Virus record (IMG/VR): IMGVR_UViG_3300034117_002447
Span: 186,001 to 250,000 of that record
Length of the DNA stretch: 64,000 bases
Reading direction: 5' to 3' (one strand)
Each line of letters starts with the position of its first letter. Positions within the stretch are counted from its first letter, which is position 1. Positions 8,589-48,948 of this stretch are shown here, in pieces. The notes under the pieces are model-generated. The model worked only from the letters and a program-made list of their open reading frames with translations, was not told where the DNA came from and did no database searches. Made by a program: the position numbers and the translations under genes.

Positions 8589-8601
8589 ATAAGAGTATGG
8601 G

Positions 8602-11388: not shown

Positions 11389-11486
11389 TGACTTGATAAT
11401 TGTTTCTATTTTATACTCGATTTTTATATTTTGTTTAGGTAAACCGTAAAAAATATTTAAGTATAAAAGTAAAAACACAAAGATAC

Positions 11487-12386: not shown

Positions 12387-14999
12387 TTACATTGGTATAA
12401 CATTAACAAGTAATCCGTTGACAAATTGCAACAGCATCATAGATCGACCATCAAAAACCATTATATCACCAGTATAGCCGCCTCCGCTGCCTCCGCCGCC
12501 TCCATCCGCACCAGGAGGTCCGGGTGCTCCAGCAGGTCCAGTTCCTCCAGGAGTTCCAGCAGGTCCAGCAGGCCCGGCTGGACCAGTTAATCCGGTAGGT
12601 CCAGTTAATCCAGTAGGTCCTTGAATTCCTTGAGGACCTGGGGCACCAGCAGGACCAGTTCCTCCAGGTGAACCGTCTCTACCTGAAGTACCTGAAGAAC
12701 CGGCTTCTCCCCTAGGCCCTTGAATTCCCTGAGGTCCAGTTGCTCCAGCTGGGCCAGTTAATCCAGTAGGGCCAGTTAATCCAGTAGGTCCAGTATTACC
12801 AATTGGACCCTGAATTCCTTGAGGACCAGTAGCTCCAGTAGGACCAGTTATTCCACTTGTACCGGAAGAGCCTGCTTTTCCAGAAGTACCTGAGCTACCT
12901 GGTGCTCCAGCTAATCCAGTAGGTCCAGTTGCCCCAGCCGGGCCTTGAATTCCCTGAGGTCCAATTGGGCCAGTTAATCCAGTAGGTCCTTGAATTCCTT
13001 GAGGACCTGTTCCGCCAGGTGAACCGTCTCTACCGGAAGTACCAGAAGAACCATTTTCTCCCCTAGGGCCTTGAATTCCTTGAGGACCAGTTAATCCGGT
13101 AGGGCCGGTTAATCCAGTAGGTCCAGTATTACCAATTGGACCCTGAATTCCTTGAGGACCAGTAGCTCCAGTAGGACCAGTAGCACCGGTTGGACCAGTT
13201 ATTCCGCTTGTTCCAGAAGTACCTCTTGTTCCAGAAGAACCTGAGCTACCTGATGCACCAGCAGGTCCGATTGGGCCGGTTGCTCCGGCTGGACCTTGAA
13301 TTCCTTGAGGACCAGTAGCACCAGTTGGACCAGTTGCCCATGATCCATATCCTGAACCTGAATACCAAGTATGACCGGTTGGTATAGTAGTAAATCCAGG
13401 ATTCCATTTTAGTGAGCTATTATCTCCGTTTGATGCACATATAAAGATCCATGTATCTGAGGGTCTTTGAGTGTCCGTATATGATTTAACTATTAAATAA
13501 CTTGCGTTATAGGGACTAGCCATTCCCCTAGGAGGTGCATAGTATAGAGCAGACCATGTTCCAAGAGCAACTGTTTCTGGGCCAATATCGAAATGACCAG
13601 CTGTTCCGAAAGCTTTAGCGACAGGTATCGCAATTACTCTACCTGACCAAGTGACATTATTTCCGTCCCATGATACGTTACCTCCACCCGAGACAGTCCA
13701 TGTTGCATTAACTGTGTCGTATTCAGTTGGGCCCTGAGGTCCAGTAGGTCCAAGAGGTCCAGTAGGTCCAAGAGGACCAATCGGACCAGTTGCTCCACTT
13801 GTACCGGAAGTACCTCTTGTTCCAGAAGAACCTGAGCTACCTGGTGCTCCAGTTGGACCAAGAGGACCAGTTGCTCCAGCTGGACCTTGTATTCCTTGAG
13901 GACCAGCAGGTCCGATTGGACCAGTTGCTCCACTTGTACCGGAAGTACCTCTTGTTCCAGAAGAACCTGAGCTACCTGGTGCTCCAGTTGGACCAAGAGG
14001 ACCGGTAGGACCAAGAGGACCAGTTAATCCAGTTGGGCCAGTTTGACCGCTAGTTCCTGAAGAACCATTTGCTCCAGCTGGACCTTGGATTCCTTGAGGA
14101 CCAGTAGGCCCAAGAGGTCCAGTAGCTCCAGCTGGACCTTGAATTCCTTGAGGACCGGTTGGACCGGTTATTCCACTTGTACCAGAAGTACCTCTTGTTC
14201 CAGAAGAACCTGAACTACCTGGTGCTCCAGTTGGGCCGATTGGGCCAGTAGCTCCAGTAGGACCAGTTGGTCCAGTTATTCCGCTTGTTCCAGAAGAACC
14301 ATTTGAACCTGAAGTTCCAGAAGCACCTGACATACCGCTTGTTCCTGAAGAACCAGTAGGACCAGTCGCTCCAGTTGGACCAGTATTACCAATTGGACCT
14401 TGAATACCCTGAGGGCCAGTTGGTCCAGTTATTCCACTAGTTCCAGAAGAACCGTTTGTTCCGGCTGGACCTTGAATACCCTGAGGACCGGTTGGTCCAG
14501 TTATTCCACTTGTACCAGAAGTACCAGCAGTTCCTGAAGTACCTCTTGTTCCAGAAGAACCTGAGCTACCGGGTGCTCCAGTAGGTCCAGTTGCTCCAGT
14601 TGGACCTTGAATTCCTTGAGGACCAGTTGGACCAGTTATTCCACTTGTACCAGAAGTACCAGCAGTTCCTGAAGTACCTCTTGTTCCAGAAGAACCTGAC
14701 GAACCGGATGTACCTGAAGTACCTCGTGTTCCGGAAGAACCTGAACTGCCGTTTGAGCCTGACGTTCCGCTTGTTCCAGAAGAACCTGCGGCTGACACCC
14801 AAGAGGTTCCATTAAACCTATAAATGTTTTTATCTGCTCGATTGTAGAGAATCGCGCCTTCCTTTGCATTAGCTCGACCTCTACTTATATTATCAACTAG
14901 AGTTAGAGCAAAACCGTTTACGCCGGAGGTTCCAGCGGTTCCGCTTGTACCTTCTCCAAATTCTACTCCGCCTGGTGCATTAATTTTATAACTACTCAT
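12387..14999 (-). CDS. Collagen-like fibre protein (GPT/GPQ/GIQ triplets interleaved with GSS/GTS triplets) with a central ~130-aa globular insert
   Basis: Gly at every third residue over most of the 870 aa; non-repetitive insert at about 13340-13725. Confidence 0.85.
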
Positions 15000-15013: not shown

Positions 15014-18000
15014 TTATGGAAGCATTCCATTACTTATTATTTCATATCTAGCTGCTAATGTAATACGATTATTGGCATTATTGTTAATCTTTACAGCAAG
15101 ATCAGTTCCACCGGCTCCGACTGTAATTGTGGCAGTCCATAGGGATGCATCTTGAGCAACAACAATTTCGGTGAAACCTGCACCTACTAGTGAAAGAGCA
15201 CCGGCTATATTCTTAACCGCTCCAGTGTAGTGGCGATAATCAGTTGAACCGGTAACCTCTTCAGAACCTACTACGTATAATTCAATACCGTATATTCGAT
15301 TAGGGGTTGGAAAGTCAAATAGGATAGGTGTACCTGGATCAATGAATAATTGACCAGCTGCCATGGGGTTAATCCGTCCAGAATAGAGTACTCCATTATG
15401 AACTAATTTTTCGCGATCGTCAGATGCAGACTGTTTACCGTAAATGTATTCTTTAGGTCGACCGTCATATAGTGCAACTGGTCCTAATAGTAAAACATCA
15501 TTAGTATCGTCTTCTCTAATATCGAAAGTTGAATCTTCAATAGTAGTCCCAGAAGCACCGTATGTTACGTATGTATTAAATGTACCGGACGTTGTGATTG
15601 ACGTACCTGATGTTCCAGCTGAACCTGAAGTACCAGAAGTACCTCTTGTTCCAGAAGAACCTGAAGTACCTGAAGAACCTGTTCCACCAGGTGCACCAGT
15701 TGCTCCACTAGTTCCAGAAGTACCAGAAGTACCTCTTGTTCCAGAAGAACCAGACGAACCGGATGTTCCAGCCGTACCGCTTGAGCCGTTTGAACCAAAT
15801 GTTACAAACGAAATTGTATAGTTTATTCCATTCGTTAGTGTTCCATTTGCGGCGATTGGCGCAAGTCCAAGATCAAACCATGTTGTGTTATTGGTAATTG
15901 AAATAAGTCTGTAAATACCTATTATGCTATTATTACCAACTTCGGTAATTTGAATTAAGCTATTAGAGGTTATTAATGATAACCAGGTTGCGTAGTTTAC
16001 ACTAGCAGAAGAAGTTGTAGATACGCTAAGTTTAGCTAGCGCAGCGAAGGTAGCACTATCTGTTCTAAAGAATGTTGCTCCAGGGTTAGAGTGTGCTGGT
16101 ATACTTGAATCAAATAACCATCTACCGCTATTTGAACCGTCAATACCGGCAATACCAGTCGCTCCGGATGTTCCGCTTGAGCCGTTTGAACCAGAAGTAC
16201 CAGAAGTACCTCTTGTTCCAGAAGAACCAGAAGAACCATTTGAACCAGAAGTACCAGAAGAACCAGAAGAACCATTTGAACCAGAAGTACCAGAAGAACC
16301 AGAAGTACCAGAAGTACCTCTTGTTCCAGAAGAACCAGAAGAACCATTTGAACCAGAAGTACCAGAAGAGCCTGATGTACCAGACACTCCGTCTATACCG
16401 GAGGTTCCGCTTGAACCAGCTGATCCTGAAGTACCACTTGAGCCGTTTGAACCAGAAGTTCCAGAAGTACCGCTTGTGCCTCTTGTTCCAGAAGAACCTG
16501 AGCTACCATTTGAACCGGAAGTTCCGCTTGATCCATTTGAACCTGAAGTTCCTGATGTACCTGAAGAACCGTTTGAGCCGCTTGTTCCAGAAGAACCTGA
16601 GCTACCATTTGAACCGCTTGTTCCACTTGATCCATTTGAACCAGATGTTCCAGACGTTCCAGAAGAACCGTTTGAACCGGATGTACCTGAACTTCCAGCT
16701 GAACCTGATGTTCCAGAAGAACCGTTAGAACCGGAAGTACCTGATGTTCCACTTGAGCCGTTTGCACCAGAAGTACCTGATGTACCGCTTGATCCATTTG
16801 AACCTGAAGTACCTGATGTACCACTAGTACCTCGTGTCCCAGACGAACCTGAGCTACCATTTGAACCGGATGTACCTGAAGAACCTGAAGTTCCGGATAC
16901 TCCGTCTATACCAGAAGTTCCGCTTGAACCGGAAGTACCTGAAGTACCAGAAGTACCTCTTGTTCCAGAAGAACCAGAAGAACCATTTGAACCGGAAGTA
17001 CCAGATGTACCTGAACTTCCATTAGAACCTGACGTACCTGAAGTACCTGAGCTACCATTAGAACCCGAAGTTCCACTTGATCCATTTGAACCAGAAGTAC
17101 CAGATGTTCCAGAAGAACCGTTAGAGCCGGATGTTCCGGAAGTTCCGCTTGATCCATTTGAACCAGATGTACCTGAAGTTCCACTTGAGCCGTTAGAACC
17201 AGATGTTCCTGAAGTACCAGAAGTACCTCTTGTTCCAGAAGAACCTGAACTACCGTTTGAACCTGAAGTACCAGAGCTTCCATTCGAACCAGAAGTACCT
17301 GAAGAACCACTTGTACCACTTGAGCCGTTTGAACCTGACGTTCCAGAAGAACCATTTGAACCTGAAGTTCCCGAAGTTCCCGAAGAACCATTTGAACCTG
17401 AAGTTCCAGAAGAACCATTTGAACCTGATGTACCTGATGTGCCTGAAGAACCGGCTGTTCCAGAAGTACCGCTTGTACCGCTTGTACCTCTTGTTCCAGA
17501 AGAACCTGAGCTACCATTTGAACCTGACGTACCGGAACTACCATTTGAACCGGAAGTACCTGACGAACCTGAAGTTCCTGATACTCCATCTATACCAGAT
17601 GTTCCACTTGATCCGTTTGAACCTGACGTTCCAGATGTACCAGATGTTCCTGAAGTACCTCTTGTTCCAGAAGAACCGGAGCTACCGTTTGAGCCTGACG
17701 TACCTGAACTTCCATTTGAACCTGAAGTTCCGCTTGTTCCAGAAGAACCATTTGAACCAGATGTTCCTGAAGTTCCAGAAGAACCATTTGAACCGGAAGT
17801 ACCAGAGGTTCCACTTGATCCATTTGAACCGGAAGTACCAGAGGTTCCACTTGATCCATTTGAACCAGATGTACCTGATGTACCGCTTGTGCCTCTTGTT
17901 CCAGAAGAACCGGAGCTACCGTTTGAGCCTGAAGTACCTGAACTTCCATTTGAACCTGAAGTTCCGCTTGTACCTGAGCTACCATTAGAACCGCTTGTAC

Positions 18001-21000
18001 CTGATGTACCAGATGTACCAGAAGTACCTCGTGTTCCAGAAGAACCGCTTGATCCGTTAGAGCCTGATGTTCCAGAAGAACCTGATGTTCCAGATACTCC
18101 ATCTATACCAGAAGTTCCAGAAGATCCATTAGAACCTGAAGTTCCAGAAGTACCGCTTGTTCCTCTTGTTCCAGAAGAACCACTTGAGCCGTTTGAACCT
18201 GAAGTACCACTTGAACCATTTGAACCTGAAGTCCCGCTTGAGCCGCTTGAACCGTTTGAACCTGATGTTCCAGATGTTCCACTTGATCCATTTGAACCTG
18301 ATGTACCAGAGCTTCCATTAGAACCAGAAGTACCTGACGTACCTGAGCTACCGTTTGAACCTGAAGTACCTGACGTACCTGAGCTACCGTTTGAACCAGA
18401 CGTACCTGAGCTACCGTTTGAGCCGCTTGATCCTGAAGTACCAGAAGTACCTGATGCTCCAGATGCGCCGCTTGTTCCAGATGAACCGTTTGAACCGGAA
18501 GTACCAGCTGTACCGCTTGTTCCAGAAGTTCCAGAGCTACCATTTGAACCTGATGTTCCTGAAGTGCCGGAAGAACCATTAGAACCTGAGGTTCCAGAAG
18601 AACCGTTTGAACCTGAAGTTCCACTAGTTCCAGAAGAACCATTTGAACCGGAAGTACCAGCTGTACCTGAAGTACCACTAGTTCCTCTTGTTCCAGAAGA
18701 ACCACTTGAGCCGTTAGAACCACTTGAACCGGAAGTACCTGAGCTTCCATTTGAACCGGAAGTACCAGCAGAACCTGAAGTTCCTGATACTCCATCTATA
18801 CCTGATGTTCCACTTGAACCTGACGTACCTGAGGTACCGCTTGTACCTGAAGTACCTCGTGTTCCAGAAGAACCTGAGCTACCATTTGAACCACTTGTTC
18901 CAGAAGAACCGTTTGAACCTGATGTTCCACTTGAGCCGGAAGTACCTGAAGAACCTGAAGTACCAGCTGTTCCGGAAGAACCGTTAGAACCAGATGTTCC
19001 GGAAGAACCATTTGAACCGGAAGTACCGGATGTTCCACTTGATCCGTTTGAACCTGAAGTACCACTTGATCCGTTTGAACCTGATGTTCCGCTTGTTCCT
19101 GAGCTACCGTTAGAACCAGAAGTCCCGCTTGTTCCTGAAGAACCGTTAGAACCAGAAGTCCCAGAAGATCCATTTGAACCGGACGTCCCGCTTGTTCCTG
19201 AAGTCCCGCTTGTACCGGATGTTCCTCTTGTTCCAGAAGAACCTGAGCTTCCATTTGAACCAGAAGTTCCACTTGAGCCGTTAGAACCTGATGTTCCAGC
19301 TGAACCTGAGGTTCCGGATACACCGTCTATACCTGAAGTACCTGAAGAACCGGACGTTCCAGCTGTACCACTTGTTCCGGATGTACCTGAAGTACCTCTT
19401 GTTCCAGAAGAACCTGAGCTACCGTTAGAACCAGAAGTTCCCGAAGAACCGTTTGAACCAGAAGTACCTGATGTACCTGAGCTACCATTTGAACCAGACG
19501 TGCCAGATGAACCGTTTGAACCTGAAGTTCCAGAAGTACCTGAACTTCCATTAGAACCTGAAGTTCCACTAGTTCCAGAAGAACCATTAGAACCTGAAGT
19601 TCCACTAGTTCCAGAAGAACCATTAGAACCAGAAGTACCTGAAGTACCGCTTGTACCTGAAGTACCTCTTGTTCCAGAAGAACCGCTTGAGCCGTTTGAA
19701 CCACTAGTTCCAGAAGAACCGTTTGAACCTGAAGAACCTGATGTACCAGAGCTACCATTTGATCCTGAAGTTCCGCTTGTTCCAGAAGTACCAGAGCTAC
19801 CATTTGAACCTGAAGTACCAGCTGAACCTGATGTTCCAGAAACACCGTCTATACCTGACGTTCCAGAGCTACCATTTGAGCCTGATGTACCTGATGTTCC
19901 AGAAGTACCTCTTGTTCCAGAAGAACCAGAAGAACCATTTGAACCAGAAGTTCCACTTGAGCCGGAAGTTCCTGAAGAACCTGAAGTTCCAGCGGTTCCA
20001 GAAGAACCGGAAGTACCGCTTGAGCCATTAGACCCAGAAGTTCCGCTTGTTCCAGAAGAACCTGAGCTTCCATTAGAACCAGATGTACCGGATGTACCAG
20101 TTGAACCTGATGTACCAGATGTTCCAGCAGTACCGCTTGAACCATTAGATCCAGAAGTTCCAGAAGAACCTGAAGTTCCAGACGAACCGTTTGATCCTGA
20201 AGTACCTGAAGTACCCGAGCTACCGTTTGAACCGGAAGTTCCTGATGTTCCAGAGCTTCCATTAGAACCAGAAGTTCCAGAAGATCCATTAGAACCAGAT
20301 GTACCAGAAGTACCTGAAGAACCTGAAGAACCGGAAGTTCCGCTTGAACCGGATGTTCCTGACGTACCTGAACTTCCATTTGAACCAGAAGTCCCAGATG
20401 TTCCTGAAGAACCATTAGAACCCGATGTTCCTGAAGTACCTCTTGTTCCAGAAGAACCAGAAGAACCATTTGAACCAGAAGTTCCAGAAGTACCAGCAGA
20501 ACCTGACGTTCCTGATACTCCATCTATACCTGATGTTCCGCTTGAACCTGAAGTACCTGAAGTACCTCTTGTTCCAGAAGAACCTGAAGAGCCATTTGAA
20601 CCAGAAGTTCCAGAAGAACCGTTTGATCCTGAAGTACCTGAAGTACCTGAACTTCCATTTGAACCTGAAGTCCCAGATGTTCCGGAAGAACCGTTTGACC
20701 CGGAAGTTCCAGAAGTACCTGAGCTTCCATTTGAACCGGAAGTACCTGATGTTCCTGAAGTACCCGATGTTCCTGAGCTACCATTTGAACCTGATGTACC
20801 TGAAGTACCAGAGCTTCCGTTTGAACCAGAAGTTCCAGATGTTCCAGAAGAACCATTTGAACCGGACGTACCGCTTGTTCCAGAAGAACCATTTGAACCT
20901 GATGTTCCGGATGTTCCAGAAGTACCTCTTGTTCCAGAAGAACCAGACGAACCGTTTGAACCAGAAGTTCCGGAGCTTCCATTTGATCCTGAAGTACCAG

Positions 21001-24000
21001 CTGAACCTGACGTTCCTGATACTCCATCTATACCGGAAGTTCCCGAGCTACCACTTGTACCTGAAGTACCGCTTGTTCCAGAAGTACCTCGTGTTCCAGA
21101 AGAACCTGAACTTCCATTTGAACCGGAAGTTCCTGATGTGCCAGAGCTTCCATTAGAACCAGAAGTTCCAGAAGAACCGCTTGTACCACTTGATCCGTTT
21201 GACCCTGAAGTTCCAGATGTTCCAGAAGAACCGTTTGAACCTGATGTACCTGAAGTTCCAGAAGATCCATTAGAACCAGATGTACCAGAAGATCCATTAG
21301 AACCTGAGGTTCCAGAAGAACCTGAAGTACCGGATGTACCATTTGAACCATCTACTCCGCTTATACCTGAAGTACCAGAAGTACCTCGTGTTCCAGAAGA
21401 ACCTGAGCTACCATTTGAACCACTTGTTCCAGAAGAACCGTTTGAACCTGAAGTTCCACTTGATCCGTTTGAACCTGAAGTTCCAGAAGAACCATTAGAG
21501 CCTGAAGTACCAGCAGAACCTGAAGTTCCAGATACTCCATCTATACCGGAAGTACCAGAAGAACCGGCTGTTCCGGAACTTCCATTTGATCCTGAAGTAC
21601 CGCTTGAGCCGTTTGAACCAGAAGTACCTGACGTTCCTGAGCTGCCGTTTGAACCTGAAGTTCCAGCTGTTCCAGAAGAACCATTAGAACCGCTTGTCCC
21701 AGAAGTACCTGAGCTACCATTAGAACCAGATGTTCCACTTGAGCCGTTTGAACCAGAAGTACCGGCGGTTCCTGAGGTTCCAGACGTACCTGAAGTTCCT
21801 GAGGTTCCGCTTGTACCAGTCGATCCTGACGTTCCGGATGTTCCGCTTGTACCAGCAGTGCCTGATGAACCTGATGTTCCAGAAGAACTTGAAATTTGGC
21901 CAGTTGAGGTTAACACAAAAGAGTAATTTTGAGTTCCCTCAGTGTACCAAGTCACATCATGATTTCCACTAGACTGATCGACTACGTATATTTTAACAAT
22001 CATTCTATCCGTTGGATTAATAGTTGTTGTTGGTAGCACTACATCAACGTTAGCTTCAACTGGAATCGTTGAACTAATCCAACCTATAAGAACTTGATTA
22101 GTTGGTATTACTGTTCCATAACTAACACCTGCACTATTTGCTAATTCAATAGTAACAAATGTGTCTGTATTAAATCCTGCGCCGTCTTTTAAGAAATGTA
22201 AATGGAATCTTTGTGTTCCTCCTGGTATTACAGAAAATCCTAATTCAGGAGTTATAAATTGTTGTACTAATACTGGAGTAGTACCTGTTGTAGTTTTAAG
22301 TATTGATTGTTGAGCAGCGCCGGTCGGATTAATATTTAGGTCTCTATACGTACCTATTCCAGAAGCAACTGACTGATTAAAATAATAAATTTGACCTGCC
22401 GATATTCCAGTAGCTCCACTAGTTCCTGAAGAACCAGATGTTCCACTTGAACCGGAAGTTCCAGAAGTTCCGCTTGTTCCAGAAGTTCCTGACGAACCTG
22501 AAGTTCCAGAAGTTCCGCTTGTACCCGCCGTGCCGGATGAACCTGATGTTCCCGAAGTTCCACTTGAACCAGAAGTTCCAGTAGTTCCAGAAGAACCTGA
22601 TGTTCCAGCCGTTCCGCTTGATCCATTTGAACCAGATGTTCCTGACGAACCAGAAGTACCTGAGCTACCGTCTGAACCTGAAGTTCCAGAAGAACCATTT
22701 GTTCCTGAGACTCCGTCTATTCCAGAAGTACCTGAAGAACCATCTGATCCTGACGTTCCAGAAGAACCATTTGAACCTGATGTACCAGATGTTCCTGACG
22801 AACCATTAGAACCACTTGTTCCAGAAGTACCTGAGCTACCATTTGAACCGGAAGTCCCTGATGTTCCAGAAGAACCGTTAGAACCTGATGTTCCTGACGA
22901 ACCAGAAGTACCTGAGCTACCGTCTGAACCCGATGTTCCAGAAGAACCGTTTGAACCTGAAGTACCAGATGAACCGTTAGAACCTGATGTTCCTGACGAA
23001 CCAGAAGTACCTGAGCTACCGGCTGAACCTGACGTACCAGAAGAACCATTTGTTCCTGAGACTCCGTCTATTCCACTAGTACCTGAAGAACCATCTGAGC
23101 CTGAAGTTCCAGAAGAACCATTTGAACCTGATGTACCAGAGGTACCATTTGAACCTGAAGTTCCAGAAGAACCATTTGAACCAGAAGTACCTGATGTTCC
23201 AGAAGAACCGTTTGAACCTGAAGTACCAGTTGAACCAGAAGTACCGGATGTTCCTGAAGAACCGTCTGAACCTGAAGTTCCTGAAGAACCGTTTGAACCT
23301 GATGTTCCAGAGCTACCATTTGAACCTGAAGTACCTGAAGTACCTGAGCTACCATCTGAGCCGGAAGTTCCGCTTGAGCCGTTTGTTCCTGAGACTCCAT
23401 CTATTCCAGAAGTTCCAGAAGAACCGTCTGAACCTGATGTACCGCTTGAGCCGTTAGAGCCTGAAGTACCAGATGTACCAGATGTTCCCGAAGAACCGTT
23501 AGAACCTGAAGTACCTGAAGTTCCAGAAGAACCTGAAGTACCAGAGCTACCGTTTGAGCCTGAAGTACCTGAGCTACCGTCTGAGCCACTAGTACCAGAA
23601 GAACCATTTGAACCAGATGTTCCTGAAGTACCAGAGCTACCATTTGAACCGGAGGTACCTGATGTTCCAGAAGAACCTGAAGTACCTGAGCTACCATCTG
23701 AACCTGATGTTCCCGAAGAACCATTTGTTCCAGAAACTCCGTCTATTCCAGAAGTTCCAGAAGAACCGTCTGAACCGCTAGTACCGCTTGAGCCGTTTGA
23801 ACCCGAAGTTCCAGAAGAACCGTTTGAACCTGAAGTTCCGCTTGTGCCGGAAGTTCCAGCTGAACCACTTGTTCCACTTGATCCGCTAGTACCCGAGCTA
23901 CCATTTGAGCCACTAGTACCTGAGCTACCATTTGAACCTGAAGTACCCGAAGTACCAGATGAACCAGAAGTACCGCTTGAGCCGTTTGAACCTGAAGTTC

Positions 24001-26206
24001 CTGAAGTACCTGAAGAACCGTTAGAACCAGAAGTACCTGAGCTACCGTCTGAACCTGACGTACCTGCTGAACCTGAAGTTCCTGATACACCATCTATTCC
24101 AGAAGTACCTGAAGAACCATCTGAACCTGAAGTTCCAGAAGAACCGTTTGAACCTGATGTACCGGATGTTCCAGAAGAACCGTTTGATCCTGAAGTTCCA
24201 GAAGAACCATCTGAACCTGACGTACCAGATGAACCATTTGTTCCTGAGACTCCATCTATTCCTGATGTACCTGAGCTACCGTCTGATCCTGAAGTACCTG
24301 AGGTACCATTTGAACCTGAAGTACCTGAGGTACCATTTGAACCGTTTGAACCTGAAGTTCCGTTTGAACCCGAAGTTCCAGAAGAACCATCTGAACCGGA
24401 CGTACCGGCAGAACCTGAAGTTCCTGATACTCCGTCTATTCCAGAAGTACCTGAGCTACCGTCTGATCCTGAAGTACCTGAGCTACCGTTTGATCCTGAA
24501 GTTCCAGAGCTACCATTTGAACCTGAAGTACCTGAGGTACCATTTGAACCTGAAGTACCGCTTGAGCCATCTGACCCTGAAGTTCCAGCCGAACCTGATG
24601 TTCCTGAGACTCCGTCTATTCCTGATGTTCCGGAAGATCCATTTGAACCAGAAGTTCCAGAAGAACCGTTTGAACCGGAAGTTCCAGAAGAACCATTTGA
24701 ACCGGAAGTACCTGAGCTACCGTCTGAACCTGACGTACCTGCTGAACCTGAAGTTCCGGAAACTCCGTCTATTCCTGATGTTCCCGAAGAACCGTCTGAC
24801 CCTGAAGTTCCAGAGCTACCATTTGAGCCTGATGTACCGCTTGAGCCGTTAGAACCTGAAGTTCCAGAAGAACCGTTTGAGCCTGATGTTCCAGAGCTAC
24901 CGTCTGAACCGCTTGTTCCAGAAGAACCGCTTGTTCCTGAGACTCCATCTATTCCTGAAGTACCTGAACTACCGTCTGAACCAGAAGTACCTGAAGTACC
25001 GGCTGACCCTGAAGTACCTGATGTTCCCGAAGAACCTGAAGTACCTGAGCTACCGTCTGAACCTGAAGTTCCAGCTGAACCTGAAGTTCCGGAAACTCCA
25101 TCTATTCCTGAAGTACCTGAGCTACCGTCTGAACCAGAAGTACCTGAAGAACCTGATGTACCAGTTGAACCAGAAGTACCTGATGTACCTGATGTACCTG
25201 AGCTACCGTCTGAACCTGAAGTTCCAGAAGAACCGTTTGTTCCAGAGACTCCATCTATTCCTGAAGTACCTGAGCTACCGTCTGAACCAGAAGTACCTGA
25301 AGAACCTGATGTACCAGTTGAACCAGAAGTACCTGATGTACCTGAGCTGCCGTCTGAACCTGAAGTTCCAGAAGAACCGTTTGTTCCAGAGACTCCATCT
25401 ATTCCTGAAGTACCAGAGCTGCCATCTGCACCAGAAGTCCCAGCTGAACCAGACGTTCCACTTGAACCGTTTGAGCCGGATGTACCAGAAGTACCGGTTG
25501 AACCGGACGTACCTGAAGTACCTGACGTACCAGATGAACCGGCAGTACCGGAAGTTCCACTTGTTCCTGAAGTACCGGATGAACTAGTAAGTCCATCTTC
25601 TAATGTTGTACCAATATAGTAAAAACCTTTAATATATGGATCAACTGATCCATAAGTAGAAGTTAAATAAGTAACCATTGAATCTGATAATAGTAGAATA
25701 CCATTATCGTAATTAAAAACCCAACTTACTTCAGTGCCTGCATTATCAGTAGTTAAGATTTGGGTTCCGCCTGATGCAGGATTACCATTCCAAAATTCAG
25801 CGGTCCATCCAATTGAAGGAGCACCGCTTGCTTGCAATATCTTTTGAGGTTGAATCCAGTCTAGGATTTGTGTGTTAAAATCGTTAAGCGTCGAACAGGC
25901 TACCCATGTAGTATTATTACCTGAAATAACTTGACTTAATTCTACGGCATTTCCTGTAGAATATGCGTCTGCTACAATCGTTTCCAACGGTTGACCTGAT
26001 GCTAATAGAGCAACAGCCGCTGATTTATTTGCAACTGGGTTTTGTTTAACAACATCGAACTGAGTTAAAACTCGAGCAGCTGATATATTAGGGTTAAACG
26101 CAAACTTTGCTTCGTACCAATTAAAATTAGAGGCAGAATCAATTACGTTTGCGGCTTGGACCTTAAATACGAGTTTTAATCTTTCATTATCTGTATAGCC
26201 TGCCAT
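15014..26206 (-). CDS. Giant 3730-aa Gly/Ser/Thr repeat fibre protein (proline-free Gly-X-Y) with four non-repetitive domains
   Basis: Uninterrupted ORF. Unique domains at about 25585-26206, 21895-22410, 15790-16170 and 15014-15600, separated by (GSS/GTS/GSN)n blocks. Confidence 0.85.
16170..21895 (-). repeat. Repeat block 2 (~1900 codons of Gly-X-Y; GSN/GTR-type)
   Basis: Degenerate 9-nt unit array with 10 GIDGVSG landmarks, all encoded GGT-ATA. Confidence 0.9.
22410..25585 (-). repeat. Repeat block 1 (~1050 codons of Gly-X-Y; GSD-type, Arg-free)
   Basis: Degenerate 9-nt unit array with 13 GIDGVSG landmarks, all encoded GGA-ATA. Confidence 0.9.
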
Positions 26207-26429: not shown

Positions 26430-28313
26430 TTAGTTGAATGTTACAGTCACTGTATCGATTCTAATAGCTGAATTGTGGATTTTAAATTCTACGTATATTC
26501 CGTTTGTTGCATTAAATCCTCCAAATGTTCCATTTATTGTATTTCCACTGGATGAACCTAATCGGATTTGACCATCAGTTGCACCATCATCAAATGTTCC
26601 AAAATTATAACCTGAACCGTTTAGGATTAATGGATACGAAGTAGGTCCAAAAACTCCAACGGTTGCTCCTATTTTACGAACAGTTACAGTAAGAGCACCG
26701 CTAATTAAATCAGCTAGAGCAGATCCGCCTGCGAAAGTTCCAGCGAATACCATTGAAAAACTAGGAATTGGAACGCTTGACGAACTTAGTGTAGTATAAA
26801 ATTTTCTATAGTACGATGCAGCTGCAGTAAGTGAAGAATAGTTTGGGTTTGAACCATTTAAGTCTGATTTAAAAGCAGCTAGATCGGGTTGAATTGTTGC
26901 AGTATTTGGTGCAGTTAAGAAATATTGATCAGGTCTAACGATTGTACCACCGACAACGCAAGCATTTCCGTTTGATAGACTTGCGGTAGAAACCCATGCA
27001 GTCGTGTAATCGCTTTGTAATCTAAAAGCCTCATCGTCAAATCGCTCTACGTATTGAGTGCTATTTCCACTAGTTGGATATGTGTCCACTAATATTGAAT
27101 GAGTTGAAGAAGATTTAGTTCCGCCTGAAGACCATGGATCAAATAGTGAAGCAGTCGCGGCTGCAGTTGCTCCTCGATACCTAAAATTTGAAGAATTAAT
27201 CGCCCAATTTAAAATATCATATTCAGCAGCTGTATTGTTGAAGAAATTGGTCCATCCAGTAAAAGTACCAGAAGTTGGTGACCATGCATATTCAGCAATA
27301 GTTGGAACTCCGTACGATGGTGCAACAAATTGAAAATTAGTATTTGCGCCAAGAGCACGGCCTTGAGTATTTGCGTTTAGGTTATTAATTGCATCAACGT
27401 GTGCACTAAACTGTGAAGTTAGAGTGTAGTACTCAACACCGCTTAGATGCTTGGTTACAATATTTCCTAGAGTTTCTTCGATTGTACAAGTTGAACCGGC
27501 TCCAAAGCTTGGAGTAGATGCATTTGTATCAAAGAAAACTGCAGATTGTGTATAAGTGAAAGTTTGAGCACCATCACTAGTTGAATCAGTTAGGTTTGTA
27601 ATAACTATATTGTATTTACCGCCGTCTATTAAACCTACGCCAGATAGTACTTGATCAATATCAACGGTTACGGTAATGTCAGCTTTTTGTTTTAAACTAT
27701 CAGTTGCAAAACCGGCAATAATAATGTCAATACCGTCTGTACTTGAATATGTCCCGTCTGCAGTAACTCCCTGAGAAAATGTTGAAATAATAGTGGTGCC
27801 ATCTGCATCATATACATCAACGGTTACCGTAGCGTCTCCGCCTTGACCAGTTACCGCATTTGCTGTACTGAATGAGACTGTGCTACTAGTTGTCGTTGAC
27901 TGATTTGTACCTGCCCAAGTTCCAGCCTTAAATGGAGTTCCTTCAGTCGTTGGATTGCTTATTCTAACCGTTGATCTAGCTAAAGTTTCTGATACTAATC
28001 CAGACGAGGTTCCGTCGTTTGTGCCAAAGTGACTTGCGAATGTTGGAGTAGGAACGTAAACATTTATTGTACTTGAATCTCCAGGTTTCTGAGCTCCAAG
28101 TATATCAATTCCAACAAAATTAACTTTTGAATAATTTCCGACAAGAACGCCTTCATCATAAAAATCAATTCCGCTAATTCCACTTGAGCCGGTATTTGGA
28201 GAATCATTCCAATATAAATTACCCGAATTATCTATTGCTAAAAATTTAGTCTTGGTGTTATCCTGGGATACTCCGCTAAGATCAACTTGTTTTATTTTAA
28301 GTTTGTGGGACAT
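26430..28313 (-). CDS. Ser/Thr/Gly-rich putative virion structural protein
   Basis: 627 aa, rich in beta-type T/S/G residues, first gene behind a late-promoter motif; carries a vestigial TGSSGISG. Confidence 0.6.
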   Translation of the reverse strand: MSHKLKIKQVDLSGVSQDNTKTKFLAIDNSGNLYWNDSPNTGSSGISGIDFYDEGVLVGNYSKVNFVGIDILGAQKPGDSSTINVYVPTPTFASHFGTNDGTSSGLVSETLARSTVRISNPTTEGTPFKAGTWAGTNQSTTTSSTVSFSTANAVTGQGGDATVTVDVYDADGTTIISTFSQGVTADGTYSSTDGIDIIIAGFATDSLKQKADITVTVDIDQVLSGVGLIDGGKYNIVITNLTDSTSDGAQTFTYTQSAVFFDTNASTPSFGAGSTCTIEETLGNIVTKHLSGVEYYTLTSQFSAHVDAINNLNANTQGRALGANTNFQFVAPSYGVPTIAEYAWSPTSGTFTGWTNFFNNTAAEYDILNWAINSSNFRYRGATAAATASLFDPWSSGGTKSSSTHSILVDTYPTSGNSTQYVERFDDEAFRLQSDYTTAWVSTASLSNGNACVVGGTIVRPDQYFLTAPNTATIQPDLAAFKSDLNGSNPNYSSLTAAASYYRKFYTTLSSSSVPIPSFSMVFAGTFAGGSALADLISGALTVTVRKIGATVGVFGPTSYPLILNGSGYNFGTFDDGATDGQIRLGSSSGNTINGTFGGFNATNGIYVEFKIHNSAIRIDTVTVTFN

Positions 28314-28374: not shown

Positions 28375-29331
28375 CTATTTCCGTTTCTCCTTGGCATATA
28401 AAATAGCAGCAACGTATTTCCCAGATGCGCTTTCCGGATCAACGTACGATAGATCAGTATCAAATGGACTACTTGATCGAAAATCTGCTTTATAAAATAA
28501 CGTATCTTTGGTTGAATCAGTTACTCCAGCATTGTGCATAATTGGGCACTTATTGTATGCATGGATATCAGAAGTTCCCCAACTAAAATCAAGTTCAGGA
28601 GTAACAATCGTCTGGGCTCCCATTTTCCATGCTCCCCAAAGAACTGACCACATATCAGCACACCACTTTTGAATTGGATTAAATTGAGCCGCTTCTTCTG
28701 TAGATAAATTAGAGCGGTCTTGATGCTCTCTATCACACATGTACTTGTAAATAGTCAATGTGTCCTCGGCTACTTCTTTCCAGAAATCGGCAGTTACACC
28801 TTTCATTAAGTATTGAGCACCGCCTGAGCCAGCCTCATTTGCTTCCACTAATTCCGGTGGAATTCCTGAAAGACTGCATAGATCTGTGAAAATATCTTCT
28901 GATTTGCTCTTAATGTACTTCGCACCAATGTATGAAATTGTGTCGCTTACGTACCAATAAAGATCTCCATGTAGGGCATCAAAGTTAGGAAGTTCTCTAA
29001 AAATAATATCAGAATCATGGTAAAAGACAGTTTCTCCACGAAGTTCCGGATGAGCTCTAAAGTGCTGTTCTAGAATATCAGGTCTTAGGATCGGAATGTA
29101 TCCATAATTTTCAGTTATTCTCTTTTTATAGAAAAAGAATCTTACCATTGGATATTTGGAAGCAAGAGCTCTACCTTCAGGCGAAGGTTCATTATCATAG
29201 GCAAATAGAATATCTATCCAGTTAGGGTTTATTCCGCTCTTCATAAAATTATGAATTACTACCTCAACTTGCCAATGAAAATACGGGTGGTCCGGCTGAG
29301 CGGACATAAATATAGTCTTCTTAGTTAGCAT
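28375..29331 (-). CDS. GT-A glycosyltransferase resembling plant Hyp O-arabinosyltransferase (GT95) / peptidyl-Ser galactosyltransferase (GT96)
   Basis: PYFHWQVEV, YGYIPILRP, FYHDSDIIF (DxD), GGAQYLMK and WCADMWSVLWGAWKMG echo HPAT/SERGT motifs YxxWQ, GYxxLNRP, EPDHxF, GNSPxII and WVLEMYAY. Confidence 0.55.
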   Translation of the reverse strand: MLTKKTIFMSAQPDHPYFHWQVEVVIHNFMKSGINPNWIDILFAYDNEPSPEGRALASKYPMVRFFFYKKRITENYGYIPILRPDILEQHFRAHPELRGETVFYHDSDIIFRELPNFDALHGDLYWYVSDTISYIGAKYIKSKSEDIFTDLCSLSGIPPELVEANEAGSGGAQYLMKGVTADFWKEVAEDTLTIYKYMCDREHQDRSNLSTEEAAQFNPIQKWCADMWSVLWGAWKMGAQTIVTPELDFSWGTSDIHAYNKCPIMHNAGVTDSTKDTLFYKADFRSSSPFDTDLSYVDPESASGKYVAAILYAKEKRK

Positions 29332-29361: not shown

Positions 29362-31788
29362 TTATCCTCTAATGGTAGTAGTTGTAGTTAGATATTCAGT
29401 TACGTTAACTTCATACAGACACTCATCTAATATGATTTTCCACTTACCAATTGGGTCGATTGTAAATATACCTTCGATTATAGTATCAGATCCGTCGATT
29501 GTTACAGTATACATACCTTCTGAAATAGGCGCGTTTATATTATCAAATATTTGAATTACTGAATACTCAGTTGTTGATAAAACAAACGATATAGTCTTAG
29601 CCTCACGGTCTTGATAATACTCAATTGATACAGATGGGCATCCAATTGTAGTAGTAGTGGTAGTTGATGGAGCAAGCGTAGTGGTTGTGGTCGTTGCCGC
29701 TAGCGTTGTAGTCGTAGTAGTAATTCCGCTATACAGTCCGCAATCTATCACAGTTAAAGTTTGAGCACCTGCATCAAATTCATAACAGAATGTACATGTC
29801 GAGTTAATTGTTACTTTGAGAGGTCCATCGATTAGCGCTAAATTTTCAGCCGGAATTCTAGTTGTACCTGTGTAAATAATATCGGCAAATTGCTGGATCG
29901 TATAAAGTAATCCTCCAGGCCCAGTAACTTGAAAAGTATATTGACTTTCGCCAGTCTGGGATGGAGTAACTGTGAATTCGCTACATGGATCAATCGTCGT
30001 CGTTGTAGTAGTCGGAGCAATCGTCGTTGTAGTAGTCGGAGCGATTGTTGTAGTGGTAGTCGGCTCAATTGTCGTAGTAGTAGTCGGCTCAATTGTCGTA
30101 GTAGTAGTCGGAGCGATTGTTGTAGTGGTAGTCGGTGCAATCGTCGTAGTAGTCGGCGCAATTGTCGTCGTAGTGGTTGGAGCAGCGGTGGTAGTTGTTG
30201 TGGTAACTGCACCAAACTCAACGTTAACTACGTATTGGCAGCCTGCCGCATTGGTAAACGTGTACGTACCATATACGGTATTAATATTTGAAGATAAGTA
30301 CTCAGAATCAGTTCTGTTAAATATCCATGAAAGACTTATGTTAACTCCATGCAATTCAGTCAGATTGTAGGTAGGTCCACCTGCTGACGCAAAGACTACT
30401 GAATACGGACCAGTTGGAGTTCCTATAAATGATATGACTGTTGCATTTAAGTTTTCAGCAACTGAGTAATTAATTGAGCCTGGAGCACAAGTCGTTGTTG
30501 TACTTGTTGGTGCGATCGTAGTAGTCAAGGTAGGCGAAACCGTTGTAGTTGTTGTAGTTGGAGTAGCCTGAAAAGGAATAGCGTAAAAAGGACTAAATGA
30601 GGTTACTTGCGCCCATATTTTTCTAGTTGCATAGTCAGGAGCATACGGTCCAGTTAAGACAGTTTCATCAACATAGACTCCATTTACATTATGGAATATT
30701 CGAACTGTGTCAAATACCGGCTCAGTCATTGCTTGAGGTAGAGTAAATTCAAGAAGAGCTCCAATAGTTAATGGAGTTGAAATATCAAATGCCATTGCTG
30801 CATTATTTAAGTAATAACCTGCCGGTAAAATACCAGATGGAGATAGAGTCGGCGCTGGTACAGAACATACTGTGATTGGCGCAGATTCTGTAGCGTTTGT
30901 ATCTAACACAACCGATACTCCAACCTGTGGGTGATTCGTTGAACTTTGACCAGCTTGCACAATTTCGGTCGTACATAAAACGCCAGCTGCTCCGCAATAA
31001 GGATCAGCTGATGTGTAAATTAGAGTTACAAAATCGCCACCGTCTAGTCCATATCCAGCAACAGAAGTGTTCCAATAAAGTTCATCAGTTGAATCAACTG
31101 CCCCGTAATTACTTGCAGTAGTCCCATTGTCTTTACTAAAGTACGCTGGCGCTACTTTGGTGCCATCTCCTATGATTATTTGTTGGCCGTTAATGAACAA
31201 TAAGTACTCACTAGTCGTGATCGGCGCGGGCATCGGAAGTAATCCTGGTGAAACTAAAGCAGAGTCTCCAGTAATTACATTTGGCGTTACCGATCTGGTT
31301 ACAGCCGCTCTACAAGAACCTGCACCGCCTCCGCTGAGTAGCGTCCAGCCAGTTGATACTAAATATCCATAAAATCCTTCAATTCGGCCGCCCTGTTGAG
31401 TAATGTAGATTACTTCTCCTGGAACTCCAGTTGGCGGAATTGCTCCGTATACTTTAAGTCGAAGCCTTTTACCTTCAACTACATCTTCCATTACCGCATT
31501 TTTACCGGTGATTGCGCCAGTTGGGTAGAGTTTTATTACTTCAGGATACGACCCATTTTGTTGCTGTGCACCGTATACAGTTAGACCTTGCCTAACGATG
31601 ATTGTGTTTGCTGAAATTCCTTCAATGTCAACTGAAACTCCACCAGTTTGATCGAAGTTAACGGCTGATAGAAACTCAGTTATTGCTGACTTTATTGTGC
31701 TAAAATTAAAATTAGCCAAATCAACAACGCTAGTTAAGCTAGCACCGTTAATTGATTTTACACTTGAAATTTTTAATTGAATTGACAT
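29362..31788 (-). CDS. Mucin-like virion protein with poly-Thr/Pro stalks separating globular domains
   Basis: (I[AE]PTTTTT)n and further T5-T6 tracts; globular segment ending WAQVTSFSPF; N-terminal ANFNF motif. Confidence 0.7.
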   Translation of the reverse strand: MSIQLKISSVKSINGASLTSVVDLANFNFSTIKSAITEFLSAVNFDQTGGVSVDIEGISANTIIVRQGLTVYGAQQQNGSYPEVIKLYPTGAITGKNAVMEDVVEGKRLRLKVYGAIPPTGVPGEVIYITQQGGRIEGFYGYLVSTGWTLLSGGGAGSCRAAVTRSVTPNVITGDSALVSPGLLPMPAPITTSEYLLFINGQQIIIGDGTKVAPAYFSKDNGTTASNYGAVDSTDELYWNTSVAGYGLDGGDFVTLIYTSADPYCGAAGVLCTTEIVQAGQSSTNHPQVGVSVVLDTNATESAPITVCSVPAPTLSPSGILPAGYYLNNAAMAFDISTPLTIGALLEFTLPQAMTEPVFDTVRIFHNVNGVYVDETVLTGPYAPDYATRKIWAQVTSFSPFYAIPFQATPTTTTTTVSPTLTTTIAPTSTTTTCAPGSINYSVAENLNATVISFIGTPTGPYSVVFASAGGPTYNLTELHGVNISLSWIFNRTDSEYLSSNINTVYGTYTFTNAAGCQYVVNVEFGAVTTTTTTAAPTTTTTIAPTTTTIAPTTTTTIAPTTTTTIEPTTTTTIEPTTTTTIAPTTTTTIAPTTTTTTIDPCSEFTVTPSQTGESQYTFQVTGPGGLLYTIQQFADIIYTGTTRIPAENLALIDGPLKVTINSTCTFCYEFDAGAQTLTVIDCGLYSGITTTTTTLAATTTTTTLAPSTTTTTTIGCPSVSIEYYQDREAKTISFVLSTTEYSVIQIFDNINAPISEGMYTVTIDGSDTIIEGIFTIDPIGKWKIILDECLYEVNVTEYLTTTTTIRG
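29994..30207 (-). repeat. Thr-rich tandem repeat (about 8 x I[AE]PTTTT(T))
   Basis: Direct ~24-nt repeats visible in the DNA, and the translation. Confidence 0.85.
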
Positions 31789-45328: not shown

Positions 45329-45343
45329 TATTTAATTTTTATT

Positions 45344-48943: not shown

Positions 48944-48948
48944 TTAGT

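Follow-up and report, generated by a model that had tools for sequence, protein, structure and literature searches.

Introduction

Plant hydroxyproline O-arabinosyltransferases HPAT1-3 (CAZy GT95, Pfam PF23452) are type II membrane proteins with a Golgi-type topology (PMC8012813) and a predicted GT-A type fold (PMC8476585). They are initiating enzymes that transfer L-arabinofuranose to peptidyl hydroxyproline of repetitive, extended polypeptides rich in hydroxy amino acids, such as extensins. GT95 is described as related to GT96, the peptidyl-Ser alpha-galactosyltransferases SGT1/SERGT1 (PMC8012813), while a deep-learning study predicted a non-GT-A fold for GT96 (PMC8476585). PF23452 also includes uncharacterized bacterial proteins. 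In phages, virion glycosylation is so far known to have been demonstrated only in mycobacteriophages, where glycans are reported on C-terminal extensions of capsid and tail-tube subunits, are added by phage-encoded glycosyltransferases (GTs) and alter antibody recognition (Freeman et al. 2023, as summarized in PMC12619734). Collagen-like and mucin-like surface fibers are also glycosylated in Bacillus (BclA), and chloroviruses and mimivirus encode fiber and capsid GTs such as PBCV-1 A64R; these enzymes belong to different GT families from the one described here.

Here we analyzed a 64,000-nucleotide stretch of jumbo phage DNA (positions 186,001 to 250,000 of IMG/VR record IMGVR_UViG_3300034117_002447; hereafter, the window). 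An initial annotation, made from sequence alone, had proposed that one of its genes encodes a plant-type peptide O-glycosyltransferase similar to GT95 or GT96 and located beside a mucin-like gene. We find that the gene belongs to a large uncharacterized family that is a remote relative of GT95, and that genes of this family in many phages and bacteria lie next to genes for proteins with poly-threonine tracts.

A predicted glycosyltransferase gene in the window

The ORF occupies positions 28375..29331 on the minus strand, starts with ATG and, with its stop codon, encodes 318 amino acids. The five motifs named in the initial annotation are all present and in the order claimed: YFHWQ (residues 17-21, positions 29269-29283), located after strand beta-1; GYIPILRP (residues 77-84, 29080-29103); DSD (residues 106-108, 29008-29016); GGAQY (residues 170-174, 28810-28824); and WCADMW (residues 223-228, 28648-28665). 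In an alignment of 56 family sequences Y78, D106, D108, G171, W223, M227, H266 and K281 are invariant, and W20, A172, Q173, Y174 and W228 are at least 90% conserved. The motifs are, therefore, not chance strings, and the initial observation is confirmed. They fall on the most conserved columns of a very large family, PHROG 4417 (unknown function; 861 clusters at 50% identity), whose profile matches the protein over nearly its full length (E 3.1e-65, residues 8-313 against profile positions 3-291 of 293). No published characterization of any family member was found, and literature searches on DUF7164, on HPAT in phages, on poly-threonine in phages and on glycosylated major tail proteins returned nothing relevant.

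The AlphaFold model of the protein (pLDDT 97.6) is a GT-A fold. D106-x-D108 is the DxD metal and nucleotide-sugar binding motif of such enzymes, and H266 (28534..28536, minus strand), located in an I-x-H-N-A-G context, is the likely third metal ligand, a role inferred from the general GT-A architecture. The first beta-strand of the Rossmann-like domain starts at residue 7 and no N-terminal hydrophobic segment is seen in either the sequence or the model. The protein thus has no type II membrane anchor, in contrast to HPATs.

Relationship to known glycosyltransferase families

The protein gave no hit to any Pfam or NCBIfam model, including HPAT and GT8 (Pfam searched at E <= 10). A six-frame search of the whole phage genome with PF23452 (gathering score 23.9 bits) found nothing, nor did PF23452 and PF23741 (DUF7164) searches of the phage genome and three phage records. 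None of 56 close relatives matches PF23452. A single family member, P0182, has a colinear sub-threshold hit (14.8 bits, E 0.019) in the region of the GYIPILRP motif. A sequence search of the PDB produced only TALE-repeat proteins aligned over residues 111-175, with no stretch passing on its own; we judged these to be chance matches amplified by the repeats of the targets.

More sensitive comparisons revealed a specific signal. Of the 30 nearest named ESM-Atlas clusters 22 carry PF23452, 6 carry DUF7164 and none carries GT8. The proximity to DUF7164 is limited to this language-model result; PF23741 has no hit in the phage genome at E <= 10, and no DUF7164 members to compare against were found in 201 Bacillota genomes. 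Next, the family profile was aligned by hhalign with an alignment of 31 bacterial proteins, all of which match PF23452 (best E 6.9e-16). The two aligned over 265 columns with a probability of 95.3% (E 2.2e-8) at about 17% identity. In control comparisons the same profile scored 11.2% against GT8, over 45 columns around the DxD only, and 1.1% or less against GT2, GT6 and GT32-like sets, whereas HPAT-type subsamples as small as the GT8 set gave 75-94% over 234-276 columns. The motifs Y-x-x-W-Q, DxD, W-x-x-D-M, I-x-H and K-x-x-Y are colinear in the two alignments: the YFHWQ motif aligns with an invariant W-Q of the bacterial HPAT-type family, DSD with its invariant DxD, WCADMW with its invariant W-E-S-D-M, and H266 with its invariant H231. 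In contrast, GGAQY has no counterpart there and is specific to the phage protein's family. Judging by their names, the bacterial HPAT-type proteins come from Acidimicrobiia and Proteobacteria, a different taxonomic range. Many are fused to a PqqD peptide-recognition domain, which implies a peptide substrate. Two word-index searches, seeded with a bacterial PF23452 protein and then with its alignment, returned only bacterial proteins, and the link to plant HPATs is transitive, through bacterial PF23452 members. We conclude that the protein is a remote relative of GT95, not a member.

At the level of structure, the model is nearest to retaining GT-A enzymes of GT8, GT24 and GT6 (glycogenin, LgtC, Gat1, UGGT, alpha-3-GalT). 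The similarity is limited to the fold, with 5-12% identity, TM of only 0.4-0.5 and extra helical elements around residues 132-236 of the phage protein. Firm placement in another GT-A family such as GT8, with no GT95/96 signal, had been named beforehand as the outcome that would refute the HPAT assignment; this outcome was not observed. The support rests on comparison with PF23452-type (GT95) proteins.

Finally, none of the 40 listed tblastn hits, nor any genus in the tally of 77 hit records, is a Mycobacterium phage, so the family is different from the enzymes that glycosylate mycobacteriophage virions.

Genomic neighborhood

The genomic context claimed in the initial annotation, downstream of a poly-Thr/Pro protein and upstream of fiber genes, also holds. 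The gene directly upstream in the direction of transcription (29362..31788, minus strand) encodes an 808-aa protein with mucin-like poly-Thr/Pro linkers, which contains 15 runs of four or more Thr and is 19% Thr and 6% Pro. It has no Pfam or PHROG hit. Homologs with the same tract precede the GT gene in related contigs, while tblastn searches of annotated phages with this protein, and with a common family of upstream proteins, returned only unannotated or hypothetical hits. Directly downstream lies a gene for a moderately Ser/Thr-rich 627-aa protein (26430..28313, minus strand; PHROG 31482, unknown function), followed by a gene for a giant 3730-aa Gly-X-Y (collagen-like) protein with Ser and Thr in the X and Y positions (15014..26206, minus strand; 29% Gly, 34% Ser, 15% Thr; Gly at every third position in 90% of triplets in residues 200-1400) and a gene for an 870-aa collagen-like tail fiber with G-P-T / G-x-T repeats (12387..14999, minus strand; PHROG tail-fiber families down to E 6e-125). 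The region also encodes T4 gp15-like and virion structural proteins.

Further along are genes of putative glycan-modifying enzymes. A 958-aa protein (8602..11478, minus strand) is a GT4 (GT-B) glycosyltransferase fused to an FkbM-type methyltransferase (Glycos_transf_1, 9e-15; Methyltransf_21, 1.4e-14; PHROG 2170 glycosyltransferase). A 221-aa protein (7923..8588, minus strand) is a SAM methyltransferase of the Methyltransf_24 type, and the same domain is fused to the family GT in P0126. A 910-aa protein (5183..7915, minus strand) has an N-terminal methyltransferase and a C-terminal GT9-like domain. On the plus strand, a 196-aa 2OG-Fe(II) oxygenase of the prolyl-4-hydroxylase type (PF13640, 54.9 bits, over the cut-off) is encoded at 11487..12077; the match at genome positions 197790-198056 corresponds to 11790-12056 of the window. 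A second copy is present elsewhere in the genome. In other members of the family the GT is fused to GT2, Gly_transf_sug, Glyco_transf_7C or methyltransferase domains, and in viral loci the genes just downstream are variable GT2+MTase, GT32-like and GT6 genes.

To assess whether the poly-Thr neighbor is a general feature, 31 dereplicated IMG/VR loci were examined. In 17 of them the gene immediately upstream (-1) encodes a 40-aa window with at least 60% Ser+Thr, compared to 4 of 233 distant genes and 12 of 397 genes at all positions other than -1 and -2 (Fisher p = 8e-15 against the latter set). The loci are phylogenetically related and, therefore, the p-value overstates their independence. Poly-Thr tracts are carried by 29 unrelated clusters of upstream proteins. 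About 45% of the dereplicated viral loci have no poly-Thr gene at -1, and several bacterial and MAG loci have none nearby.

In all 12 Firmicutes phages and prophages with the gene that were examined, a major tail protein or an Ig-like decoration protein ends in poly-Thr, and in 11 of them it is encoded directly upstream of the GT. Pairs of a GT and its poly-Thr partner include gp50 and gp51 of phiFL1A and gp8 and gp9 of iLp84. Conversely, phages S-CoN_Ph24 and SANTOR1 lack the GT, and their homologous proteins lack the tail. Five Firmicutes phages have no GT2 or GT1-group gene. In bacteria, 33 Bacteroidota loci place a fused homolog of the GT next to a C39-peptidase ABC exporter, and at least 7 of these have GG-leader peptides with Thr-rich or poly-Thr cores. 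Sphingobacterium detergens and Chitinophaga silvatica are examples of species with such Bacteroidota clusters.

Proposed function

Taken together, the data suggest that the gene encodes a soluble, metal-dependent (DxD plus His) GT-A fold glycosyltransferase that most likely acts in the cytoplasm of the infected cell as a polypeptide O-glycosyltransferase. It would transfer the first sugar from a nucleotide-sugar to threonine, and perhaps serine, in poly-Thr, mucin-like tracts of virion proteins before or during assembly. The candidate acceptors are the 808-aa protein and possibly the two Ser/Thr-rich collagen-like proteins encoded downstream. In this view, the GT4, GT9-like and methyltransferase genes at the end of the same gene string would extend and methylate the glycan, and in the five Firmicutes phages without GT2 or GT1-group genes the family GT would have to start it. 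We estimate the probability of this reading at roughly 0.6. The ORF, the size of the family, the fold of the model, the conserved catalytic-type residues, the profile-level kinship to HPAT-type proteins and the association with poly-Thr proteins in three independent settings are established by our analysis. That poly-Thr is the acceptor, that the enzyme initiates rather than extends a glycan, that it uses any particular donor sugar and that it is retaining (a guess from structural neighbors) is inferred, as is glycosylation of the virion itself, from genomics and without biochemical evidence. The association is by gene neighborhood only; poly-Thr/Pro linkers are common in tail fibers of Bacteroidota phages and could be neighbors for reasons of module order. 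A complex predicted for the GT, residues 545-604 of the 808-aa protein and Mn scored 0.00, which is not evidence either way.

The interpretation given in the initial annotation is thus partly supported. A GT-A enzyme with a signal toward HPAT was correctly recognized, and the suggestion that it initiates glycosylation on Ser/Thr of virion proteins gained strong comparative support. Membership in PF23452 was not supported, hydroxyproline is unlikely to be the acceptor as the general case because most phages with this enzyme have no prolyl hydroxylase, and the suggestion that the gene is informative on the origin of the plant families gained no support.

A broader reading, which remains tentative, is that a previously unrecognized two-part module, a poly-threonine tag on a protein and this HPAT-related enzyme encoded right after it, is used by a very wide range of phages, from Bacteroidota-type jumbo phages to Enterococcus, Lactobacillus, Staphylococcus and Clostridium siphophages, to coat tails, fibers and decoration proteins with mucin-like O-glycans. 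Bacteroidota would use the same module to glycosylate exported leader-peptide products, and the family would be the prokaryotic counterpart of the plant extensin-glycosylating GT95/GT96 enzymes. If the family does what its neighborhood implies, virion O-glycosylation is common in phages of gut, dairy and environmental bacteria and has a simple signature, a poly-Thr tail plus this gene, that can be read from genomes, including those of tractable phages such as VPE25, phiFL1A, iLp84/PLE3 and phiCTP1. This would bear on phage stability, host adsorption, mucus adherence and immune recognition in phage therapy. It would also assign a function to PHROG 4417, extend the plant HPAT family to bacteria and phages, and point to a class of glycosylated, exported Thr-rich peptides in Bacteroidota. 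The proposed system resembles that of mycobacteriophages in that poly-Thr C-terminal tails of major tail proteins are encoded next to the GT, but the hosts are Bacteroidota-type and Firmicutes.

Alternative explanations

An unlikely but surviving alternative is that the enzyme adds a later sugar to a glycan started by another host or phage enzyme, or modifies host surface polysaccharide, its position beside poly-Thr genes reflecting module order only. The nearest solved structures (LgtC, WbbM, LARGE1, XXYLT1) mostly act on glycans, bacterial homologs are fused to a second GT-A domain, and this phage has other GTs that could initiate. However, the family GT is the conserved element while the accompanying GTs vary, and in five Firmicutes phages it is the only GT among the GT2 and GT1-group types. 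Moreover, its presence or absence tracks the poly-Thr tail on otherwise homologous tail proteins, and the bacterial fused forms are found in peptide-export clusters with Thr-rich precursors, not in recognizable polysaccharide loci.

Less likely still, the enzyme may be truly HPAT-like, with a phage prolyl hydroxylase converting Pro in the P-T-n linkers or collagen-like G-P-x repeats to hydroxyproline, which the GT then glycosylates as in plant extensins. The kinship to PF23452, the prolyl-4-hydroxylase-type gene in the window and its second copy, and the fact that poly-Thr runs are usually preceded by Pro are consistent with this possibility, as is an Acidimicrobiales locus that combines this domain with PF11397, the Skp1-Hyp GlcNAc-transferase family. 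However, no PF13640 gene was found in the complete genomes of phages MA9V-3, VPE25 and iLp84 or in a 93%-complete 252-kb relative whose GT is 67% identical, and no prolyl-4-hydroxylase homolog was found within 10 kb of the GT in 80 viral loci. The feature common to all settings is Thr runs, not Pro.

A divergent member of GT8 (LPS or glycogenin type) is improbable: although the best structural matches are GT8 enzymes and their retaining GT-A relatives, there is no PF01501 hit at E <= 10, and the profile and Atlas comparisons described above disfavor it. A DNA-base glycosyltransferase protecting phage DNA from restriction is the least likely, for although many phage GTs do this and methyltransferase genes are nearby, those methyltransferases are FkbM/Methyltransf_24 types fused to GTs, no similarity to T4-type DNA GTs appeared in any search, and the gene is not found beside nucleotide-metabolism genes but inside structural modules in every phage examined, between capsid or tail-tube and tape-measure genes.

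The glycosyltransferase gene and its family

The region 28375..29331 corresponds exactly to one ORF on the minus strand, with an ATG start and a 318-aa product. The initial annotation had listed five motifs in a defined order, and this observation held: translation of the ORF placed YFHWQ at residues 17-21, GYIPILRP at 77-84, DSD at 106-108, GGAQY at 170-174 and WCADMW at 223-228. The motifs coincide with the most conserved columns of the protein's family. In 56 sequences that are 33-76% identical to the query, Y78, D106, D108, G171, W223, M227, H266 and K281 are invariant, and W20, A172, Q173, Y174 and W228 are at least 90% conserved. The window is part of a 271,290-bp viral record judged complete by CheckV and thus belongs to a jumbo phage. 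Three IMG/VR contigs carry an identical copy of the gene.

Searches of Pfam and NCBIfam returned no hit for the protein, even at E <= 10. In PHROGs the protein was placed over its full length in phrog_4417, a family of unknown function (E 3e-65). A phmmer search of PDB sequences listed only TALE-repeat proteins (E down to 3e-8) matching residues 111-175 (window ~28807-29001). No single stretch was significant. This is a chance match amplified by repeats and not homology. The family itself is very large. A word-index search found 1588 proteins, and an exhaustive search found 861 clusters at 50% identity with E <= 1e-3, of which 423 reach E <= 1e-30. At least 595 IMG/VR stretches encode a relative, and 77 GenBank phage records carry one, including Enterococcus, Lactobacillus, Staphylococcus, Lactococcus, Clostridium and Chryseobacterium phages, nearly all annotated as hypothetical. 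Many members are 500-1160-aa fusions with GT2, Gly_transf_sug, Glyco_transf_7C, GT25-like or methyltransferase domains, which already places the domain in glycan-building machinery.

Predicted fold

A model of the protein was built with AlphaFold2 using the 56-sequence alignment (pLDDT 97.6, pTM 0.94). A Foldseek search of the model against the PDB returned only GT-A glycosyltransferases: the WbbM C-domain, UGGT (GT24), alpha-1,3-GalT (GT6), and glycogenin, LgtC, XXYLT1 and LARGE1 (GT8), with TM scores of 0.40-0.50. All top neighbours are retaining enzymes that use DxD plus a distal His for the metal. The invariant D106-x-D108 and H266 fit this pattern, although their assignment as metal ligands is an inference. 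The protein starts directly with the first beta-strand at residue 7, so it is soluble.

Relation to the HPAT family

The initial annotation proposed a plant-type peptide O-glycosyltransferase similar to GT95 (HPAT) or GT96 enzymes, and this interpretation is partly supported, with the support bearing on GT95. Direct HMM tests failed, but several independent indirect tests point the same way. In an ESM-Atlas feature search restricted to named clusters, 22 of the 30 nearest clusters carry PF23452 (HPAT), 6 carry DUF7164 and none carries GT8. One family member, P0182, has a sub-threshold PF23452 hit whose protein and profile coordinates are colinear (aa 63-112 against HMM 64-114, E 0.019). An Acidimicrobiales MAG that encodes a fused homologue also encodes, 4 kb away, a 290-aa protein that passes Pfam's HPAT threshold. 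The family of this 290-aa protein (alignment A2, 31 sequences) matches PF23452 in 31 of 31 members, with a best E of 6.9e-16. Profile-profile comparison of the phage family (alignment A1) with A2 gave 95.3% probability and E 2.2e-8 over 265 columns covering residues 8-310. In this comparison Y-x-x-W-Q, the Tyr of GYxPxLRP, DxD, W-x-x-D-M, I-x-H and K-x-x-Y are aligned, while GGAQY is not. Controls were run in the same way. A1 against a 4-sequence GT8 alignment gave 11% over 45 columns, while six random 4-sequence subsamples of A2 gave 75-94% over 234-276 columns. A1 against GT2, GT32-like and GT6 sets from the same loci gave 1.1% or less. The family is therefore likely to be a specific, remote relative of the Pfam HPAT family and not a divergent GT8, but it is not a member by Pfam's own criterion. 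Kinship with the plant enzymes is transitive, being seen only through bacterial proteins. GT95 and GT96 are stated in the literature to be related (PMC8012813).

In the Acidimicrobiales MAG (L084/L085, contig JBDQKM010000005.1) one locus unites a 1013-aa fusion of the phage-type domain with an F5/8 type C domain and PF11397 (the Skp1-hydroxyproline GlcNAc-transferase family), a second PF11397 protein, a faint O-FucT-like hit (E 0.035, well below Pfam's cut-off) and a bona fide PF23452 HPAT-type protein. It is thus a cluster of eukaryote-style protein O-glycosyltransferase families in a bacterium. Half of family A2 is fused to PqqD, the peptide-recognition element of RiPP pathways. Among the proteins recovered in the searches for HPAT-type relatives (P0327-P0402), a bacterial family, mostly Proteobacteria by the names given, fuses a PF23452 HPAT-type GT to a PqqD domain, and in one case to an FkbM methyltransferase. 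These proteins are candidate RiPP glycosyltransferases.

Genomic context in the jumbo phage

On the minus strand, large tail or baseplate-type proteins (36141-55521) are followed by a 690-aa protein and then by a 450-aa protein with an N-terminal Amidoligase_2 domain (PF12224; 31843-33195), which is conserved two genes upstream of the GT in the sister jumbo-phage contigs (cluster c4). Next come the 808-aa poly-Thr protein (29362-31788), the GT and a 627-aa protein. The following gene (15014-26206) is a single ORF of 3730 aa made almost entirely of Gly-X-Y triplets with Ser, Thr, Asn or Asp in X and Y (29% Gly, 34% Ser, 15% Thr), interrupted by a few globular segments. Gly occupies 90% of every-third positions across residues 200-1400. 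As a collagen-like triple helix the product would be several hundred nm long, and relatives of 2200-2900 aa follow the GT in sister contigs. Long ORFs in other frames and on the opposite strand over this stretch, for example 16476-21926 (+) and 22530-25619 (+), are by-products of the repeat. An 870-aa collagen-like tail fibre with G-P-T repeats comes next. The end of the fibre gene string (5183-11478, minus strand) consists of three multi-domain genes, a GT4+FkbM methyltransferase fusion, a Methyltransf_24 protein and a methyltransferase+GT9-like fusion, a combination that implies methylated glycans.

A prolyl-4-hydroxylase (P4H)-type 2OG-Fe(II) oxygenase gene (PF13640) is located on the opposite strand at 11487-12077 (+), wedged between the collagen-like fibre gene and the GT4+FkbM gene, which suggests hydroxylation of the G-P-x collagen-like fibres. 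A second such gene is present at 151889-152173 (-) of the phage genome (G000); the two score 54.9 and 42.4 bits. T4 gp15-like and virion structural proteins flank the region. The GT gene thus lies in a virion module that also encodes a small glycan-building toolkit.

Poly-Thr proteins encoded next to the GT in viral contigs

Genes were called in 80 IMG/VR loci, the proteins were clustered with low-complexity masking, and each was scored for its richest 40-aa Ser+Thr window. Loci whose GTs are at least 70% identical were collapsed, leaving 31 groups. The gene directly upstream on the same strand has a window with at least 60% Ser+Thr in 17 of 31 groups, so that about 45% of the dereplicated loci lack a poly-Thr gene at position -1. 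The second upstream gene has such a window in 6 of 28. Positions +1 to +4 do so in 0-8%, and genes more than four positions away in 4 of 233. Comparison of the -1 gene (17 of 31) with all genes other than -1/-2 (12 of 397) gave a Fisher p of 8e-15, although the gene calls are heuristic and the loci are not phylogenetically independent. The tracts are true poly-Thr of the type T5-S-T4-A-A-P-T5 and occur in 29 upstream protein clusters that are not homologous to one another outside the tract. Downstream of the GT the genes vary and include GT2+methyltransferase, GT32-like and GT6 genes. A conserved first GT followed by variable ones is the pattern expected of an initiating enzyme.

In phages of Firmicutes the gene sits inside the head-tail module. 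The protein encoded just before it is the major tail protein in phiFL1A gp50 (annotated), phiCTP1 gp18, Staphylococcus phage RQ1 and six prophages; one of these prophage proteins is 49% identical to annotated Staphylococcus major tail proteins. In iLp84 gp8 and 521B it is an Ig-like decoration protein instead. Every one of these proteins ends in a poly-Thr or P/T-repeat tail. In phage RQ1 (L178, 4223-4925) the annotated major tail protein ends in a short Thr run, and an overlapping ORF in another frame continues with about 70 residues of poly-Thr repeats, which looks like a programmed frameshift giving a long-tailed variant. In VPE25 the GT follows the capsid gene, and the major tail protein a few genes on ends in T3-D-T10. 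Two phages that lack the GT genome-wide, S-CoN_Ph24 and SANTOR1, have homologous proteins without any Thr tail. No GT2 or GT1-group gene was found in iLp84, phiCTP1, phiFL1A, RQ1 and VPE25. If the tails are glycosylated by a phage enzyme there, this one must start the glycan.

Bacterial homologues

Most chromosomal homologues are 500-590-aa fusions in Bacteroidota (Chitinophaga, Pedobacter, Sphingobacterium, Mucilaginibacter), and they have no Ser/Thr-rich large neighbours. One metagenomic locus with precomputed Pfam labels shows a C39-peptidase ABC exporter, a HlyD-type partner, several small ORFs and further uncharacterised genes next to the fused GT. Homologues of this exporter lie within 6 kb in 33 of the genome loci, and homologues of the HlyD partner in 23. 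At least seven Bacteroidota loci encode small proteins with a conserved double-glycine leader followed by Thr-rich or poly-Thr cores, one with 13 consecutive Thr, beside fused homologues of the GT and C39-peptidase ABC exporters: L013 7400-7669 (-), L042 5608-5856, L063 250-495, L073 5615-5863, L053 1945-2172, L052 2293-2496 and L181 4109-4345. In L181 two neighbouring genes read, by eye only, like an ATP-grasp and a SPASM-type enzyme; Pfam records no family for them. The small proteins are possible glycosylated exported peptides. Together with the PqqD fusions in A2, these loci show that candidate peptide acceptors rich in Thr recur in a setting unrelated to virions.

Inferred function

In the most likely mechanism, the enzyme would bind a nucleotide-sugar through DxD/His and a divalent metal and transfer the first sugar to Thr hydroxyls of extended poly-Thr tracts on virion proteins in the cytoplasm of the infected cell. 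Accessory GTs and methyltransferases, where present, as in this phage, would build on it, and the result would be a mucin-like coat on fibres, tail tubes or decoration proteins. We put a probability of about 0.6 on this reading as a whole. That the protein is a GT-A glycosyltransferase is close to certain, and that it is a remote homologue of the HPAT family is likely. The ORF and its conserved residues, the size of the family, the predicted fold, the profile-level match to HPAT-type proteins and the association with poly-Thr genes were established by the analysis. Everything functional, including the acceptor and the initiating role, is inferred and rests on gene neighbourhood. Virion glycosylation of this kind is known from mycobacteriophages (summarised in PMC12619734). 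We found no paper that mentions this family, DUF7164, or poly-Thr tails with a phage GT, in a search that did not cover subscription journals. The enzyme family, the poly-Thr tag, the breadth across phage groups and the link to the plant HPAT family appear to be new.

A glycan-extending or polysaccharide role is an unlikely alternative. It fits the structural neighbours and the fusions, but does not explain the tail presence/absence pattern, or the phages in which the enzyme is the only GT among the GT2 and GT1-group types. Less likely still is hydroxyproline as acceptor, that is, true HPAT chemistry. The local P4H-like gene keeps this possibility alive. However, that gene is missing from three complete phage genomes and from a 93%-complete sister genome that carry the GT, and from the 10-kb surroundings of 80 loci. 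Membership in GT8 is rejected by the profile controls. A DNA-modifying role does not fit the structural-module position of the gene.

Additional features of the region

At the edge of the structural region (55571-59243) a late sigma factor-like protein (PHROG 234), a RuvC-like resolvase, a 3'-5' exonuclease and a full-length GroEL-type chaperonin (PHROG 5725, E 1e-158) are encoded. A 254-kb contig binned as an uncultured Bacteroidetes MAG (L005, CAIWBA010000291.1) carries a 75%-identical GT with the same neighbours. It is probably a sister jumbo-phage genome mis-binned into a bacterial MAG, which also hints at a Bacteroidota host.
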